DNA of 64,000 bases, taken from the NCBI GenBank assembly GCA_024704765.1, contig JAKMXF010000354.1:295690-359689 (forward strand), written 5' to 3'. The notes beneath the pieces were generated by a model. That model was not told the DNA's origin. It worked only from the letters and a program-made list of their open reading frames with translations, and made no database searches. A program made the position numbers and the translations under genes. Shown here piece after piece: positions 22,741 through 33,156 of the stretch (its first letter is position 1; every line of letters starts with the position of its first letter). Source of the stretch: Oopsacas minuta (lineage: Eukaryota > Animalia > Porifera).

Positions 22741-25700
22741 TCAATCAATAGGGAGACTTTCATAAGGGATTTTCATAGAAGCCCCGCCAATTTCTGGACT
22801 TGGAACAGAGATTGAGGTGCTGTAACCAGGATTTGTGATTACTTGAGAATTGTGTTTTTCTTTCTTATTTTGGCTCTGAGCTTGTCTTAACGAGCTCTCA
22901 ATTGTAACAGGTTCAAGTTGAATCGCCAAGAAGTTATTTGCCTCACTACTTTGGTTAGCACTGGGACTCTCGGTGTGTCCTTTCCTGTTTATTCGGAATT
23001 TGAGAGCAGCTGGTGGTTTGTTACTGGTAGGGTTAGAACCAGGATTTGTATTGGAGGCAATTGGAAACGAACTAGCCTGATGAACTGGTTTCCATAGGAA
23101 TACATACATGACAATCTCTGGGGTACGGAACGGATATAGAATTGTAAATATCACCCCTTGTAGCCCCAGTACGATTGTGAATATGAATGCAGTCGCTGGA
23201 GTAGGGACAGAGGCGAACACTGAGAATAACCAGGGAAGACCAAGAAGTGGAGCTAGAATAAATGTAGCGAGTAATACACTACGTAGTTGTACAAATAAAT
23301 TTCCTTTTCCTTTTGAAACTTTGAACAAGACTATAGCTGTAAGAACAAGAGCAACAAAGTTTGCAAGTGTAACTATTACCATCGGTATTATGAAAGCTAG
23401 ACTGACAAATCTTGGCTCATTACTCAACCAGCATACTTCATCAATATCGTCTATGATATATTCGTGTGTAATGGAGGGGGTGATTATCAGAAGTGGGATG
23501 GGCAAGCTCCAGCTAAGAATCACTAAGTAATGCCAGAAACGACGCTCCACCCCCCAAGCAAATATCTTAATAAACAAATATAAACCGATAGAGAAGGATG
23601 CAGTGAACACAGATAGCCAGAAATAGTATTGGATTATAGTCAGAGCAAGGCAAATTGGCCTATTGCTATACGCTCCAGCTGAAAAGATAAAGAATAACAG
23701 AGCTAGCAAGAGAGCTACAGCGAAGTTAAAATGTAGAATCGTAGCATCTTTCTTGAACAAAGAATTAGCTAGCTTTCTAGTCCTGATCCATAGAATGATA
23801 TAAGATACCACTGATATTAATAAAAATATGATAGAGAGCGATCCTAATAAATAGGATAGAATTTCTATGGCGAGATTCTCTTGTGGAGTTAGGTTCAAAG
23901 AAATAGCTGAAACTAACACTGCAAAGTTAGTGAGATGAGATACAGAACATTGAGCTGGACCAGGAAGAACCTGAGGAGAATTGGATAGAGTTGTTCCACT
24001 AGTTATCCACCCTTGTTCAATACTCTGAGTAGAAACACAAGAGTATGATATGGCAAACTTAATACTGTTATCTAACAGAGGAGGATCAAATAACAAACCG
24101 AATGATAACAATATATCTTCATTCAATTGTTCTACCATTCCTATTCCTCGTGTGAATATATTCAGATTTGAGATAGCTGTAGCAATAGAATCATTAATAC
24201 TCGTCTCTCTGGCAGTCCGACTAACAACGGCATCTACTTCTCCAAGTAACAGAGATAAACTCGGAAAGACAGAAAAGCTAACCTCAACTCCATCACCAGC
24301 ATCATTAGCCCGTACAACATTAGCAGGAATAGATACTGATGCTTGTCCTCGTGACAGAGCAGACTGATCACCAATAGAAGCAGGGCCAATGAACACTGCA
24401 TCAACAGGATCACTCACAACAGCAACAACAAGTGCTACATTCCTCTCTTCAATCAAAACACTAGAATTGACAGGGATTACTGAACCAAGCAGTTGACCAA
24501 GTTCCTCAACAGTGGTTACTATACTCGATATTTCAGTTTCAGTCTGTGTCTGTGGAGATTCTAAGAAAGCTATTCTATTCTCACTCCTGAATACATTAGA
24601 AGCAATAAGGACTATGTTATCTTGTACTTGAGCTAGAGTGTTAATAAGCTCATTCCCAGTAAGATTCATCAGAGAATCTCTAATAGCTTCTAACGAGGAT
24701 ACAGTTTGCATAATCTCGCCAGGATATAGAACCCCACTAGTAGCTGATGCTAGCTGTATTGATTGTATTATACTCTCTTCTGGTGTAAATGGGCCCTGAC
24801 CATTGTTTTGTAGAGACAGGAAGGAAGCACTTAAACAGTTTTGATAATTTGTTTCTTCTCTAATACCAGCAATATTGCATCGTTTGGAAATTGTGCCAAA
24901 CAGAGTGCTGTCTAGTTGTGTGCAGGGTATTATCGAATCGGAGTCCAGGGGTGTCGCCGGGAAGGTCAAGTCAATACCAAACTCATTTGACTCTGTAAAA
25001 GAAGCACACACAGAGTTAGATATTGTTGAAATATTGCATGTCCTTCCTCCAAAGAATGGATCACAATCACATACGTAGTTTTCAGGTGGAAGTAGATTAA
25101 TGCATATACCGTTAACACAATTGTCTGGTAAATTACATTCGTCAATATCAACACACTGCCCGTTTATTCTGGTGTAACCGTTGAAGCAGATACAACTATA
25201 ACTTCCCTCTGTATTCACACAAGCTGAGTTTGTACATGGATTAGGGTCAGCACTACATTCATTGATATCCGCACAGGTTATGCCATTGAATTCATAACCA
25301 CTAAGGCAATCACAGAAAAAGGAATTGTTCGAAAACCCTTCTGAACACATTCCTAAACTCCCACAGGGTTGTTGTGATGAGCAGATCGATGAAGTAATAG
25401 GAAGAGGATTGAATGCTAACTGTGGATTACTTCTTACGCATCGTTCTGGTCCGGGATGTAAACGTGTAGGATCGTAATTGAAGTACAAGTATACTTCATA
25501 TTCTGTCAGAGATTGCAGAGGTTCAATAGAGTAGAATCCTAACTGACATGCAACAACTATACTAGCATCAAACTGAGTGGAGTAGGTGAATGATATCGTA
25601 GAATCAACACAAAAGGATGAAGTTATATCCCAATAAATTTGGATAGAACTAGATGTCACATTGTATGTTAGGTTTAGAGATTCTAATAGAGTATAAATCG

Positions 25701-28700
25701 CACTAAGCCTTGAACCAGCCTCTGGTCTATATGCTCTCAGACCTCCGCTGTATATAGCTTCAACAAAGAAGTTATAGTCTAAGAGTGGAAATAATTCGAT
25801 ACTACCCTCAAGTGAAGAAGAAGATTCCTCACAGAAATAAAAGTTCGATGTATCACTAGGACATATATCAATCTGAAGGCCACTAGTGATAAGGGGAGAT
25901 ATAGGCCTACCTAGAAAGCAGCCTGGAAATATGAACACCGGACATTCTTCAGTCATGCTAAATGTTGTGGAAGATGGCAGAGCATACAGTGTATAAGACT
26001 CAAACTGTTGTGCGATAGGAATCAAGGGAGAACTGGTCCATTCTACTTGATATACGTTTGAACTTAAGTTAGTTGGAAGTAGAAAGTCAGTTATAAAGGG
26101 AGCAGCTGCTTCAGGGAGAAAAGAAAATACACCTCTAGTAGAGATAGCTATGTGAGTAGGATCAAAGAAATTTAGTACAAAGTTGGATCCTGGAAACTGT
26201 ATTGGTTGATATGGGAAGATGAATAGCACTACTGGATCTGTGTTATTTGGCATTTCTAACAGAGCGGAGCTGTTGAAACAAGATTGAACTCTAAATATTT
26301 TGCTTATTACATTATCATCACTGTAATGAAATACAGTCCTACTGCCGTTGGTACAAATCTGAGAATCGTATTGGAAGAAGAAAGTTCTTGCAAATCCAGA
26401 GATCGATATTAAATCCAGAATGAAATCATCCGGGTATACAGAATCAGAAGTGTGATAAAAGGTAGCACCTTGTAGCTCGTAAACAACAACAAATTTGTAT
26501 TCATAGCCGGGTATAATGTTAAGAACTGCATTATCGAGGGTTGTAGTAAGTATGGAACATGTTAGTTCAGCACTACCATTAAGACAGTATTGGTATAAAG
26601 TTTCTATAGGGAATTCTAGCGACTGGGTAAAGTCTAAAGGGAAGGGAAGTAGACTTGTAGAATACACTGAGTTTATTTGATCAGTGAATGCAGTGACACC
26701 TGTCGGTATTCCCATTAAAGTATAAGAGGATACTCCAGGAACAATATTCCATTTAACTTGTACATTGGCGAAATCTAAAATTTTAACTTCCTGAATGAAA
26801 TCAGGTGTTGTTACTTCATTAAAGGAGATTTGGAATGTTGGGCAAGATGAGATGAATGTATTTGAATTGAAGAATATTTCTGCATCGATACAATAGGTAT
26901 TCGAATAATTAAGATTATTGATTACATATGAACCTACTACACATTCCAAAATGACTATCTTGTAGCTAGGAGAGAGTGGGGTATCTCTCCTTCTCCTAAG
27001 CTGAGGGGGAGGTGTCGTAATAAATGGGAATTCAATTGAGGGGTTACATTGATCCCAATAAAGATAAATATACGAGTCAGGCGGACAGTAGAAGTCAGTA
27101 TCCCATTCTACAAGAACACTTGTATTAGAGATGAGCTGTACGCTTGTATAGAGGAGTGACTGTTCATTGATAAGATCGGGATCATTAAGATTGGGAATAC
27201 CGTCAAGAGCAGACTCAAATATTCTAACACTGTTTGATGAATTCACACGAATAGCATGATCGAATCCTGGGAGAACATTAACAACAAGATTAAGAGTCCT
27301 CTCAACAGTTATGCAAGTATAATTGGACGTATTCTCACAAGGAAGGAGAGGCATGTCTACCAAGCTAAAAAATTGTATAGGTGACGGGGTTAGATTGATG
27401 AGTTCAGTATCATTAGTGATATTCGGACACTGAGTAATATTGTTCAATTGGAATTGATTGACTCGGTAGGGTAGGAAATATATAGTTGCAGGTTGATCGA
27501 ATACTCCGTTGATAGCAATGCTTAGAGAAATGGTGTTGTAATTGAGATATGTAAATTCTAGTACAGTACTAGATGGGAATGCTCCAAATCTAGAGATTTG
27601 GTTAGATTCGAAACCGCTTAAGCATGTGCTACCATCTGTAGTTACCGTATCAGTGAATATATAACCGTATGTGTCGAAAGCAGGTGGAACGACTGTCAAC
27701 AAAGTGGGAGTAGATTCACAGGAAATAATTTTATTCCCAAAAAATAGCGATGCAAAAGGAAAATTTTCAACTGACGAACGGAGAACTAAAGTATTCTCAA
27801 ACACTCTGAAAAAAGTGAAAGAGATGGGTAAGCAGAGATTACTACTCCAAGAGGCTTCCTGATAGCTAAGTCCTTCTATTCTTCCGAAACTGATATCTAA
27901 TGCTGAGTATATTGCTGGATAGCTCTGTACCTTAGTTAATATACCAGTCGCCGCGTTCAGTAGTACAGCTTCTACGATTATACCGACAGCATAAGTAGAA
28001 TCAATTGGAACAATCAGCTGTGTATGGTTGCTAAACAAAGAATAGCATTGATAGGGAAGAGAGGCACCGGAAATGAGAGGACATGAGAGATCAAACTGCT
28101 GAGGAGCATTAACACCGTAATTATAATATTCAGTAGGAAATAGGCTGAATTCTTCTGCATGTGTTTCTGAATCCAAATTGTTACAAGAACTGCCGTTATA
28201 CCTCAGAGCATATACAGGGAAGATATACACGTTAAAATAGTCATCAGGAGTGACTACAATTGTTGACCAATCAATTGCAATGTTTTCATCAAAGCTACTT
28301 ATTGATCGGATAACAGGGATATCTATATTCTGAATAAAACCCCCAAATGCTTCTAATGTAATCCTAGTGTATCCACATGTGTTGTCAGGGATAAGATTTG
28401 ATGGGGAAATAAATCGAATATCTGTGTATACGTACACCAACTCATTAAATTCAGGAGTTGGTATGTACAGATAAACAAAATCACCTCCACACAAAGTATC
28501 GGAATCTATTTCGATATTGTGTAAGAATTTCCCCAAAATGGATTCTGTGTAATGGATTGTCATTCTATGCTGTTCACAAAAACTGATGTCAGGGGTAATC
28601 CAGCTCAATAGGACTCTATTTCCAATTGCGAAAGGAAACGAAGAGTTATCAAGAATAAAATTATCATAATTTTCCTCAACAAAACCATTACTAAAAACTG

Positions 28701-29898
28701 TCAACCTCAAAAAGTCTGCATAAAACTCAGATATCAACAAACTATTGCAGGAATCCATGAGTATGGTTATATCAGTGTAGATTGTTTGGATACAAATAAA
28801 CTGATCTACTCCCACGAATATGTCTACAAGCAAACTCAGATCACTCGTAACATAGCAGAGATAATCACTCGAATTTTCACAAGGAAGAGATTCGTTGATA
28901 TTCAATCTAAAGTACATTGTGTTCAACTGTACTGCATAGCCAGGAGGGTACTCACAACTTCCATGATAATAATCAACTTTCTTAGCATAAATGAATACTT
29001 GATAATACACTGAATCGCTTGGACGGAGGTTAAATGGAGCAGAGAAAAAAACATTTGCTTGTTCGTAACCAAAAGGAGAAACGAAAACCGATAATGTATT
29101 AACACCCCAATCAGACAGAGAGAATTGTTTGAGTACAGCGATGGATAAAAAGTCAGAAGTGAGACTTAGATAATTTCCGAAAACATCTGAAAAGCTACCG
29201 CCTGAAAGCATAAGGACACAAGGACATATATCGTTAAATACAGACACCTCAGTTACGGTAAGAAGAATTGTATAAGTCTCAGAAGCTAAGCCAGTTTCAA
29301 TAGTAAATACTCCATTGGTGAGATTTGATATCTGAATAGATTGATCCGCGGACTCGATGGAACTTCCAGAATTGTTAAAGGAATCAAGAATAATGGGTTC
29401 ATTAAAGATAAACATTAGCGTCCCCAATAGTAAATCAATTTCTACTCTAGTCAATAGAGGAGGAGTTGTATCAGGGATAACATTTAGCTGAATAGGTACC
29501 GATAGGATGGGAGAGATTTGTAGGAAAGTTGATTCGGAGCTGGTGAGACATTCAATACTAGGATTATTGCTGATAAACAACTTTATTTCTGTGGAATTAG
29601 ATGGAGTTAGTATAAATGTATGTACAAATGAAGTTACAGGTTCGAATATGAAAGACAAAGATGGAAAAGTACAATTAGAGCTAAAGTTTGCGTCATTGGA
29701 AAGTGTAAAATCCTGGCCTAAGAAGCATAAACCATTTACTGATTCATTGAATGCGAGGATGATACTGATGCTTGCGCCCTCAAACGAGAGAGAAGTATTC
29801 TCGTTAACAATAGAAGATGGTAGAAGATCGAAAGCAAGGGGACCACGAATGGATGTGGATAATACAACGAATATAAATAATGCTATGAGAGTTCCCAT
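22741..29898 (-). CDS. Adhesion GPCR 1 (2385 aa): signal peptide, FN3/Ig-like ectodomain, EGF-Ca repeats, HormR-like, GAIN/GPS, 7TM
   Basis: EGF-Ca DINECSADPNPC and DIDECNLPDNC; GPS CSVSHLTNFAVL; secretin-class 7TM (LHFNFAVALL, YYFWLSVF, CWL, LLGLPWLF). Coding region intronless. Confidence 0.93.
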   Translation of the reverse strand: MGTLIALFIFVVLSTSIRGPLAFDLLPSSIVNENTSLSFEGASISIILAFNESVNGLCFLGQDFTLSNDANFSSNCTFPSLSFIFEPVTSFVHTFILTPSNSTEIKLFISNNPSIECLTSSESTFLQISPILSVPIQLNVIPDTTPPLLTRVEIDLLLGTLMFIFNEPIILDSFNNSGSSIESADQSIQISNLTNGVFTIETGLASETYTILLTVTEVSVFNDICPCVLMLSGGSFSDVFGNYLSLTSDFLSIAVLKQFSLSDWGVNTLSVFVSPFGYEQANVFFSAPFNLRPSDSVYYQVFIYAKKVDYYHGSCEYPPGYAVQLNTMYFRLNINESLPCENSSDYLCYVTSDLSLLVDIFVGVDQFICIQTIYTDITILMDSCNSLLISEFYADFLRLTVFSNGFVEENYDNFILDNSSFPFAIGNRVLLSWITPDISFCEQHRMTIHYTESILGKFLHNIEIDSDTLCGGDFVYLYIPTPEFNELVYVYTDIRFISPSNLIPDNTCGYTRITLEAFGGFIQNIDIPVIRSISSFDENIAIDWSTIVVTPDDYFNVYIFPVYALRYNGSSCNNLDSETHAEEFSLFPTEYYNYGVNAPQQFDLSCPLISGASLPYQCYSLFSNHTQLIVPIDSTYAVGIIVEAVLLNAATGILTKVQSYPAIYSALDISFGRIEGLSYQEASWSSNLCLPISFTFFRVFENTLVLRSSVENFPFASLFFGNKIISCESTPTLLTVVPPAFDTYGYIFTDTVTTDGSTCLSGFESNQISRFGAFPSSTVLEFTYLNYNTISLSIAINGVFDQPATIYFLPYRVNQFQLNNITQCPNITNDTELINLTPSPIQFFSLVDMPLLPCENTSNYTCITVERTLNLVVNVLPGFDHAIRVNSSNSVRIFESALDGIPNLNDPDLINEQSLLYTSVQLISNTSVLVEWDTDFYCPPDSYIYLYWDQCNPSIEFPFITTPPPQLRRRRDTPLSPSYKIVILECVVGSYVINNLNYSNTYCIDAEIFFNSNTFISSCPTFQISFNEVTTPDFIQEVKILDFANVQVKWNIVPGVSSYTLMGIPTGVTAFTDQINSVYSTSLLPFPLDFTQSLEFPIETLYQYCLNGSAELTCSILTTTLDNAVLNIIPGYEYKFVVVYELQGATFYHTSDSVYPDDFILDLISISGFARTFFFQYDSQICTNGSRTVFHYSDDNVISKIFRVQSCFNSSALLEMPNNTDPVVLFIFPYQPIQFPGSNFVLNFFDPTHIAISTRGVFSFLPEAAAPFITDFLLPTNLSSNVYQVEWTSSPLIPIAQQFESYTLYALPSSTTFSMTEECPVFIFPGCFLGRPISPLITSGLQIDICPSDTSNFYFCEESSSSLEGSIELFPLLDYNFFVEAIYSGGLRAYRPEAGSRLSAIYTLLESLNLTYNVTSSSIQIYWDITSSFCVDSTISFTYSTQFDASIVVACQLGFYSIEPLQSLTEYEVYLYFNYDPTRLHPGPERCVRSNPQLAFNPLPITSSICSSQQPCGSLGMCSEGFSNNSFFCDCLSGYEFNGITCADINECSADPNPCTNSACVNTEGSYSCICFNGYTRINGQCVDIDECNLPDNCVNGICINLLPPENYVCDCDPFFGGRTCNISTISNSVCASFTESNEFGIDLTFPATPLDSDSIIPCTQLDSTLFGTISKRCNIAGIREETNYQNCLSASFLSLQNNGQGPFTPEESIIQSIQLASATSGVLYPGEIMQTVSSLEAIRDSLMNLTGNELINTLAQVQDNIVLIASNVFRSENRIAFLESPQTQTETEISSIVTTVEELGQLLGSVIPVNSSVLIEERNVALVVAVVSDPVDAVFIGPASIGDQSALSRGQASVSIPANVVRANDAGDGVEVSFSVFPSLSLLLGEVDAVVSRTARETSINDSIATAISNLNIFTRGIGMVEQLNEDILLSFGLLFDPPLLDNSIKFAISYSCVSTQSIEQGWITSGTTLSNSPQVLPGPAQCSVSHLTNFAVLVSAISLNLTPQENLAIEILSYLLGSLSIIFLLISVVSYIILWIRTRKLANSLFKKDATILHFNFAVALLLALLFFIFSAGAYSNRPICLALTIIQYYFWLSVFTASFSIGLYLFIKIFAWGVERRFWHYLVILSWSLPIPLLIITPSITHEYIIDDIDEVCWLSNEPRFVSLAFIIPMVIVTLANFVALVLTAIVLFKVSKGKGNLFVQLRSVLLATFILAPLLGLPWLFSVFASVPTPATAFIFTIVLGLQGVIFTILYPFRTPEIVMYVFLWKPVHQASSFPIASNTNPGSNPTSNKPPAALKFRINRKGHTESPSANQSSEANNFLAIQLEPVTIESSLRQAQSQNKKEKHNSQVITNPGYSTSISVPSPEIGGASMKIPYESLPID

Positions 29899-30790: not shown

Positions 30791-31733
30791 ATGGCCTCTT
30801 GTAGCACAACACTACAAGATAGAGAACATATACTCGCCTCACTAACAAAATACAATCAACACCTTACAACGATTATTCAGAAAACAGCTGATGATGTCAT
30901 AATTAACCCAACTGAGCCAACAGAAGATAAATTTCATAAAATCCTATCTCAACTCATTCCTTGTCTCACTGAGTGCTACCAAGCTATAGGTGCAAGAAAT
31001 TCCTTAGAATTTTACAGAAACCTAAATATCGAGTCAGATGAAGTATCTGCTGTAATGAAGAAGATGGATGGATTAACAGCTAGATACCATGAAATGTTGA
31101 GTAAAGTTGATGACGTAATACAGAACGAAGGACCTAAGGGTAACAATAAGATTACAACAACATTTTGATAATTATAACATTTACTTCTGTTTTTAAGATT
31201 TGAGGCTCTCAGAAATTATTCTAATTGATGTACTTACAAATGAGGCATTTAGCTTTGAAACAATTCTACAACAGAAGAAATACACAATACTTGTCTTATT
31301 ACGTCATTTTGCATGACACCCATGACATGCCCATGTGTCCAGACTCAACAAGTGGCAGTCTAAATTTATTGAAAGGTGCGTGCAGGTTGTGCTAGTTACA
31401 TTTAACTCTATACATGAGGGTGCGTCTTGGTTAGAGAGAACTCCTACAGATTATCAACTACTCTCCGATACACACAAACACATCTACAAATTACTAAACA
31501 TGAAGCGGTCGTACTACAAAACTTGGCATTCTACAGCTATTCATTACTACACAGAAAAGCTGGTTAATAACGCTAAGTTGATAAAACCTCTTATACATGA
31601 TGATCTGGAACAGACAGGTGGTGACGTAATACTGGATAAGTCTTGTAATATTCTATACACTCATTACTCAGAGGCCACAATAGATAGACCTACTGCTGAA
31701 GAATTGCTACATGTAGTTAACAGTTTAAACTAG
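30791..31733 (+). CDS. SELENOL: Selenoprotein L (AhpC/Trx-like, UxxU motif); exons 30791-31139 and 31198-31733, 294 aa with Sec at TGA 31314 and 31323
   Basis: A 58-bp phase-1 GT-AG intron joins the two ORF-track pieces. The reading is LVLLRHFA-TGA-HP-TGA-HAHV, followed by family motifs LLSD...IYKLL and QTGGDVILD...DRPTAEELL. A SECIS lies in the 3' UTR. Confidence 0.93.
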
Positions 31734-31750
31734 CATTATTGCGTGATAGT

Positions 31751-31811
31751 ATAAGCTATGTGATAGTGTGGAGCAAAACCCCAAGAGCTTCACACTAGAT
31801 TTCTGCTTTTC
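31751..31811 (+). promoter_or_regulatory. SECIS element (GUGA-core variant)
   Basis: GTGA (31760-63), 11-bp stem TAGTGTGGAGC / GCTTCACACTA (one G-U), apical AAAA, 3' GA (31798-99), lower stem aagc/gctt. It begins ~20 nt after the SelL stop. Confidence 0.92.
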
Positions 31812-32775: not shown

Positions 32776-33156
32776 ATGGGAGAAATATATCCACCAAAAA
32801 ATACTTGAGGAAAAAGATAAGGAGGTGGAGCAGGCCCCCAAAGTGCCCAAATTACAGCAAGACTACAAACGTATCCAAAACTACTCACTTGTCAAATATA
32901 CAGACATGACAGAGAAATGCAACAAGATGCGATAGATGTTTGTGTGTGTGCTTGTGAGAAATTCCCTGACAATAAGGAGTCCGCATCGAAAGATGTGAAA
33001 GAACAAATGGATGCACGCTACGGGAGAGGATGGAGTGTTGTGATAGGAGAGGGAATCTCTTTTGAAATATCCTACACTATACAGAATATTCCCTACCGTT
33101 CACGTCTCTACTTATTCTTCGGAGATGTTGGTGTTTGTGTGTGGAGGTGTTTATAA
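32776..33156 (+). pseudogene. DNAL4: DNAL4-like axonemal dynein light chain with frameshifts
   Basis: DYKRIQNYSLVKYTDM is in one frame and MQQDAIDVCVCACEKF...WSVVIGEG...VCVWRC in another, with a 1-nt deficit at ~32912. ATG-GGA-GAA (MGE) at 32776 hits TGA at 32806. Confidence 0.7.

Follow-up and report, generated by a model that had tools for sequence, protein, structure and literature searches.

We describe a long-form selenoprotein L (SelL) gene in the glass sponge Oopsacas minuta, in which two in-frame UGA codons (residues 156 and 159) are, we are confident, both recoded to selenocysteine (Sec) by one GUGA-type SECIS element. With it, a hexactinellid SelL is examined for the first time. The gene lies within an AT-rich stretch of 64 kb (the window; about 36% G+C), and the genome searched held 61,460,524 bases on 365 contigs, in line with the published O. 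minuta genome of 365 scaffolds, about 61 Mb and 36% G+C (PMC10280926). There is no mention of selenoproteins in the Oopsacas genome paper (PMC10280926). SelL, a small redox enzyme, is characterized by a UxxU motif and by one SECIS for both Sec residues, and has been reported in aquatic animals including fish, Ciona, amphioxus, Nematostella, Trichoplax and the sponge Amphimedon (PMC3473315, PMC3316567, PMC2397514).

Gene structure

Read base by base in the window, the SelL gene consists of 2 exons and 294 codons on the plus strand. Exon 1 (31 kb into the window, 30791-31139; 349 nt) begins with ATG, runs for 116 codons plus 1 nt and ends in CCT AAG G; the helical N-terminal domain of the long SelL form comes from this exon, which is present in a single copy in the genome. 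The phase 1 intron (31140-31197; 58 nt, gtaac...ctgtttttaag) is bounded by GT and AG and splits a codon, G|AT, for Asp. Exon 2 (31198-31733) encodes a beta-strand leader, the U-H-P-U motif and a peroxiredoxin (Prx)-like C-terminal domain that ends at a TAG. Within it the split codon is followed by 38 codons, LRLSEIILIDVLTNEAFSFETILQQKKYTILVLLRHFA, and then by the first in-frame TGA at 31314-31316 (Sec at residue 156) and the second at 31323-31325 (Sec at residue 159), so that the motif region reads ...LLRHFA-TGA-CAC-CCA-TGA-HAHV...; from the second TGA, 135 further codons lead to the TAG at 31731-31733. An in-frame TAA at 31194-31196 straddles the 3' end of the intron, and because of it exon 2 is unable to start independently.

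The initial annotation of this locus, made from the sequence alone, had proposed the 58-bp intron and the frame LLRHFA-TGA-CAC-CCA-TGA-CAT-GCC, and both can be read base for base where it placed them. Its gene model with two Sec codons has likewise survived comparison with other loci, with the TGAs present in 6 loci and the phase 1 splice sites in the three contigs L013, L014 and L015 described below. The exons and pieces of the gene served as the units of all searches and alignments, and a relative, P0009, was folded instead.

With regard to the surroundings of the gene, a single 2,385-codon ORF on the minus strand (22741-29898) encodes an adhesion-type GPCR, with EGF_CA and 7tm_2 domains in its orthologue; it stands head-to-head with the SelL gene, the ATGs of the two genes being about 900 nt apart, and has a syntenic counterpart in L013. 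Downstream of the SelL gene there is a 79-codon ORF on the plus strand (32917-33156). In L015 a called gene with a match to the dynein light chain family PF01221 lies between the SelL and LLC1 genes.

Conservation and selection

A word-indexed protein search with the C-terminal piece returned only four close relatives, which are 70-79% identical to it and whose public records are incomplete predictions of 104-119 aa. Their contigs, from four other glass-sponge genomes, are L013, L014 and L015 (ENA assemblies) and L022 (Logan). The three ENA contigs are syntenic, with an LLC1 gene downstream in each; the upstream neighbour on the minus strand is a 2,384-aa adhesion GPCR (by Pfam) in L013 and a cut 1,265-aa gene in L014, and none is listed in L015. 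Orthologous exon-1 ORFs occupy the same place in all four contigs and are 49-58% identical. The K-G|GTA donor and the AG acceptor, which follows a pyrimidine tract, stand at the same codon position and in phase 1 in L013, L014 and L015, with introns of varying length, and in L022 a gap likewise separates the exon-1 ORF from exon 2.

Both TGAs are found at the same codons in L013, L014, L015, L022 and a further relative, L023, and the arrangement TGA-x-P-TGA (H-P or Y-P) is kept in the first four of these. L023, which encodes the 313-aa protein P0009, is a 1,479-nt transcript-like contig in which the N-domain, TGA-CTx-CCx-TGA (L-P) and the C-domain follow one another in one unbroken frame; it too carries a GUGA SECIS. 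Estimates of dN/dS were 0.23-0.44 for exon 1, 0.21-0.38 for the segment just before the TGAs and 0.08-0.14 for that after them, with dS of 0.6-1.8 overall and above 1.5 downstream of the TGAs. Purifying selection of this strength past the TGAs means that translation must continue beyond both.

Family assignment and predicted fold

The piece that follows the TGAs matches Pfam PF13911 (AhpC-TSA_2) at E=1e-11, and for exon 1 and the 38-residue piece before the TGAs Pfam gave sub-threshold noise only. An exhaustive profile (HMM) search gathered 925 relatives. Many of these are fragments of about 130 aa that begin just past the motif, and those of roughly 300 aa read RH[FY]A-W-x-P-W-R, where W is a TGA translated as Trp (codon check: L023). 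Public full-length SelL predictions (P0007, P0009, P0025, P0026, P0031 and P0060) give the TGAs as Trp, as WLPW or WDPW, and these calls presumably come from genetic code 4. The record P0162, ‘selenoprotein L [Biomphalaria glabrata]’, skips the stretch with the UxxU motif entirely. The name ‘selenoprotein L’ occurs among the relative clusters and the family search for Biomphalaria, Mugil and Symphorus, and other members of the family carry the wrong label, either ‘prostamide/prostaglandin F synthase-like’ or ‘peroxiredoxin-like 2C’. Because of its two internal TGA codons, SelL is overlooked or cut short by gene finders. The initial annotation had anticipated that callers would split the gene, and orthologous loci are indeed split into two small ORFs or have TGA called as Trp.

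Against the SelL family profile, which includes Trichoplax and fish members and retrieves proteins named ‘selenoprotein L’, an alignment centred on the window protein reached a probability of 99.95% in hhalign (E=1e-37), with the alignment starting directly past the motif; BLASTP to the Biomphalaria ‘selenoprotein L’ gave 2e-24. Exon 1 is co-linear with the N-domain of the family, at weak significance (hhalign E=2.8e-4, probability 41%), and it matches the N-terminus of full-length P0009 with a BLASTP E-value of 1e-6. In a maximum-likelihood tree the two SelU paralogues of O. minuta split from everything else with 100/100 support, and the window protein, its orthologues and P0009 fall inside the SelL clade. 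The initial assignment to SelL is thus upheld by the profile match, by the separation from SelU and by the position of UxxU at the CxxC of human PRXL2B.

The last of these points comes from the SelL family profile, which places UxxU over C44-x-x-C47, the catalytic motif of human PRXL2B; the first TGA corresponds to C44 and the second to C47. A sequence search of the PDB with the C-terminal piece alone returned chance matches only, and the alignment required the family profile. As modelled by AF2 (pLDDT 92.6), P0009 consists of a four-helix N-domain and then a thioredoxin fold, with the motif between a strand at 160-165 and a helix at 172-182, that is, at the beta-1/alpha-1 junction. In the PDB it comes closest to human prostamide/PGF synthase (PRXL2B), and BCP/PrxQ peroxiredoxins rank next.

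Across the family the two residues between the Sec positions are HP, YP, LP or DP, with only the Pro changing little in the Sec forms compared; this variation, with Pro kept in those Sec forms, is new. Fish Cys forms read CLLC or CLFC, with Cys at both Sec positions. The initial annotation had singled out the His between the two Sec as a noteworthy variant: the His is there, but it is less special than was implied, being one of several residues that are found at this position.

The SECIS element

The SECIS of the window gene (31753-31808) begins with a helix I in which 31753-31756 pair with 31805-31808, followed by the core GUGA at 31760-31763 opposite GA at 31798-31799, a helix II of 10-11 bp (31764/65-31774 with 31787-31796/97) and an apical loop at 31775-31786, AAAACCCCAAGA. 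It thus has the N-UGA/GA non-Watson-Crick quartet, helix II, the unpaired AA and helix I. The element sits about 20-30 nt past the TAG (29 nt for the element with its GUGA core, and 20 nt for the beginning of the helix I stem) and folds with an MFE of -21.8 kcal/mol (z = -2.2). As a search pattern we used a generic SECIS description from the literature, independent of the present element, which calls for [A/G]UGA, a helix of at least 9 bp, a loop starting with AA 9-13 nt after the UGA, and then GA. Over both strands of the 64-kb window this pattern matched once, at 31760-31799, compared with an average of 0.19 matches in dinucleotide shuffles, and the match therefore exceeds chance. This sole match sits downstream of the stop, which leaves one SECIS for both UGAs. 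The earlier suggestion of a SECIS some 20 nt beyond the TAG is accordingly confirmed by the stem from 31753, by the single match against 0.19 expected and by the conservation of the core.

A GUGA SECIS is found 25-40 nt beyond the stop in L013, L014, L015 and L022, and the core U-GUGA...AAA...GA-UUU is invariant across the window gene and these four contigs. Helix II is 97.5% paired in four species and contains one compensatory pair (a G-C to A-U exchange), and in the quartet, next to the pairs U.U, G.A and A.G, the fourth pair varies between U-A, C.A and U.U, as expected for SECIS. We built a covariance model from the five orthologous elements and ran it over 92 kb without filters; it matched the SECIS of the distant SelL L023 (E=0.018) as well as those of both SelU genes of O. 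minuta (E=3e-5 and 0.0095), and found nothing else significant within the window. The Rfam model SECIS_1 (RF00031) did not report the SelL element even at E up to 10. With the same cut-off the model reported none of roughly ten glass-sponge SECIS elements, including those of GPx, SelU and the orthologues, in L007-L022 (35.6 kb, eight control loci), and its miss on the SelL SECIS is uninformative because it misses every other SECIS examined in O. minuta.

The GUGA core had also been flagged by the initial annotation as a noteworthy variant. GUGA is present as described, but it is less special than was implied, as GUGA elements are common in the sponge Amphimedon, including in its SelL (GUGA_AA pattern; PMC3473315). 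Within O. minuta, GUGA is specific to the gene: AUGA is the core in the SECIS elements located for SelU and GPx, as it is in the candidates next to two short SelL-like genes, and the SelL SECIS has retained GUGA in 6 loci. This gene-specific use of GUGA in O. minuta is new.

The selenocysteine machinery

The absence of Sec machinery from the genome would have spoken against the gene model put forward in the initial annotation, and each component that was looked for was found. The O. minuta genome contains a tRNA-Sec (77.4 bits; anticodon TCA according to ARAGORN), SepSecS (E=2e-129), exons of SPS/selD, an eEFSec with both eukaryote-specific domains (PF21131 and PF21208) and a candidate PSTK that is distinct from KTI12 (L025). 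It also contains two near-identical tandem GPx genes (C303:27282-29637; L020 and L021), both of which contain the classic in-frame TGA (NVASE-U-GLT) and, 41 nt past the stop, a SECIS.

Proposed decoding and alternatives

Judging from the sequence, both internal TGAs are almost certainly read as selenocysteine. We propose that the one type-1 SECIS, with its GUGA core and within a very short 3' UTR, recodes both UGAs, and that it would be read by the eEFSec and tRNA-Sec of the sponge. The resulting protein would combine a helical N-terminal domain with a peroxiredoxin-like thioredoxin fold and is predicted to carry UxxU where strand beta-1 ends and helix alpha-1 starts, the position that the catalytic CxxC occupies in PRXL2B. 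A diselenide redox centre has been reported for zebrafish SelL (PMC2397514, PMC3316567), and the redox centre of the O. minuta protein may, by analogy, be a reversible diselenide or a selenol pair.

Alternatively, the TGAs might be true stops, in which case the locus would encode a 155-residue N-domain protein followed by the decaying frame of a pseudogenised Prx-like remnant. TGA does act as an ordinary stop elsewhere, since in the window it ends the exon-1 ORF when this is left unspliced, and in L013 it ends a frame upstream of exon 2. We nevertheless regard this as highly improbable: the strongest purifying selection lies past the TGAs (dN/dS 0.08-0.14 with dS above 1.5), both TGAs are invariant in 6 loci while neighbouring codons change, a conserved SECIS lies past the final stop, and fish homologues have Cys at both TGA positions. 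Just as improbable, in our estimation, is an arrangement of two separate genes, one for a helical protein (the 30791-31168 ORF) and another for a Prx-like protein with an internal start (e.g., GTG at 31335), with neither splicing nor Sec. ORF-based callers give exactly this result, and the orthologous public predictions consist of a 120-129-aa ORF and a 104-119-aa ORF, but a product from the internal start would have neither strand beta-1 nor any of the redox motif. The splice sites are moreover in phase in L013, L014 and L015, the segment of exon 2 that precedes the TGAs is under selection yet has no ATG, and L023 and many family members hold both domains in one frame.

It could also be that UGA is read through without Sec (e.g., by near-cognate Trp or Cys), or that Sec is inserted at one position only. 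When selenium is limiting, other selenoproteins are known to receive a mixture of Sec and Cys at UGA, and UGAs three codons apart may decode inefficiently. We consider such decoding very unlikely given the conserved SECIS and the presence of the Sec pathway, and one SECIS is known to serve both Sec positions in SelL (PMC3316567). Selenocysteine at both positions of a single spliced gene is thus the reading that we adopt.

Other PF13911 genes in glass sponges

The O. minuta genome contains six PF13911 genes: the long SelL, two SelU and three short SelL-like genes on contig C298. The SelU genes are L009 (C66:602116-602436; RRPG-U-G-L-C) and L011 (C233:204216-204512; RRPG-U-F-L-C), with AUGA SECIS elements 27 nt and 33 nt past their respective stops. 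The short SelL-like genes form a tandem cluster (C298:426501-430268) with the motifs U-L-P-U (L007), C-M-F-S (L012) and U-P-F-U (L010); they encode about 190-200 aa and have no N-terminal domain. SECIS-like elements with AUGA are located about 22 nt past the stop of L007 and about 56 nt past that of L010. The AU-rich SECIS candidates of these short paralogues were read by eye, and both a strict scan for a perfect helix and a scan with an energy threshold missed them. The U-P-F-U copy (L010:1790-2017, minus strand) has what looks like a 1-nt frameshift, located between ...DDSKNT and LFVFLRH; the related genes of another sponge (L037) keep their frame, and the copy is either a young pseudogene or affected by an assembly error.

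That other sponge, a related glass sponge (L037:795-4381; ENA ERZ25072730), has a similar cluster with the motifs U-L-P-U, U-I-F-C and U-N-P-U, intact frames and SECIS-like elements, one of which has the core UUGA. The SRR2064712 data likewise contain both a short U-L-P-U form and the long form. On balance we are inclined to think that glass sponges possess, in addition to the long SelL, a tandem cluster of short (about 200 aa) SelL-like genes that is specific to their lineage and lacks the N-domain, and in which one or two genomes span the motifs U-L-P-U, U-N-P-U, U-P-F-U, U-I-F-C and C-M-F-S.

Discussion

The UxxU motif of SelL, its single SECIS and the GUGA core of sponge SelL have been published already, and the O. 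minuta gene adds a new SelL copy to these. Like other SelL genes it specifies a protein of about 300 residues that opens with a helical domain and continues as a Prx-like thioredoxin fold in which UxxU takes the place of CxxC, and it has one SECIS in the 3' UTR; like the SelL of Amphimedon, its SECIS is of the GUGA type. Most long SelL forms that we compared have U-L-P-U or U-D-P-U, in contrast to the U-H-P-U of O. minuta and the U-Y-P-U of two of its relatives, and compared with known SelL the O. minuta gene also stands out by a SECIS only about 20-30 nt past the stop and a strongly diverged N-domain.

Among solved structures, human PRXL2B (PDB 9us9, 9usa) is the best match in both structure and sequence, and its C44xxC47 aligns with UxxU. 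Unlike O. minuta SelL, however, PRXL2B has Cys in place of Sec and is without the N-terminal helical domain, and the two share only 17-20% identity; prostaglandin synthase activity cannot be inferred for SelL. SelU/PRXL2A (L009 and L011) resembles SelL in its membership of PF13911, in its compact SECIS placement and in SECIS elements that are matched by the SelL-built model. It differs from SelL in its one Sec (U-x-x-C in an RRPG context), its AUGA core and its long branch, set apart with 100/100 support.

To our knowledge, SelL is the only natural protein family reported to have a diselenide motif, and we know of diselenide chemistry from one fish protein only. Shchedrina et al., in PNAS in 2007, are said to have described this reversible diselenide in zebrafish SelL. 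While the O. minuta copy leaves the known SelL mechanism unaltered, it extends the range of SelL to glass sponges, and the gene model presented here fills an annotation gap. Screens based on Rfam would label glass-sponge genomes as free of SECIS elements. The gene-specific GUGA of O. minuta runs counter to the published idea that the organism, and not the gene, sets the core pattern. If the tandem cluster proves to be a feature of the lineage, hexactinellids would have more diselenide-motif proteins than any other animals, and the short genes would represent a natural series for Sec/Cys/Ser exchange at one active site.
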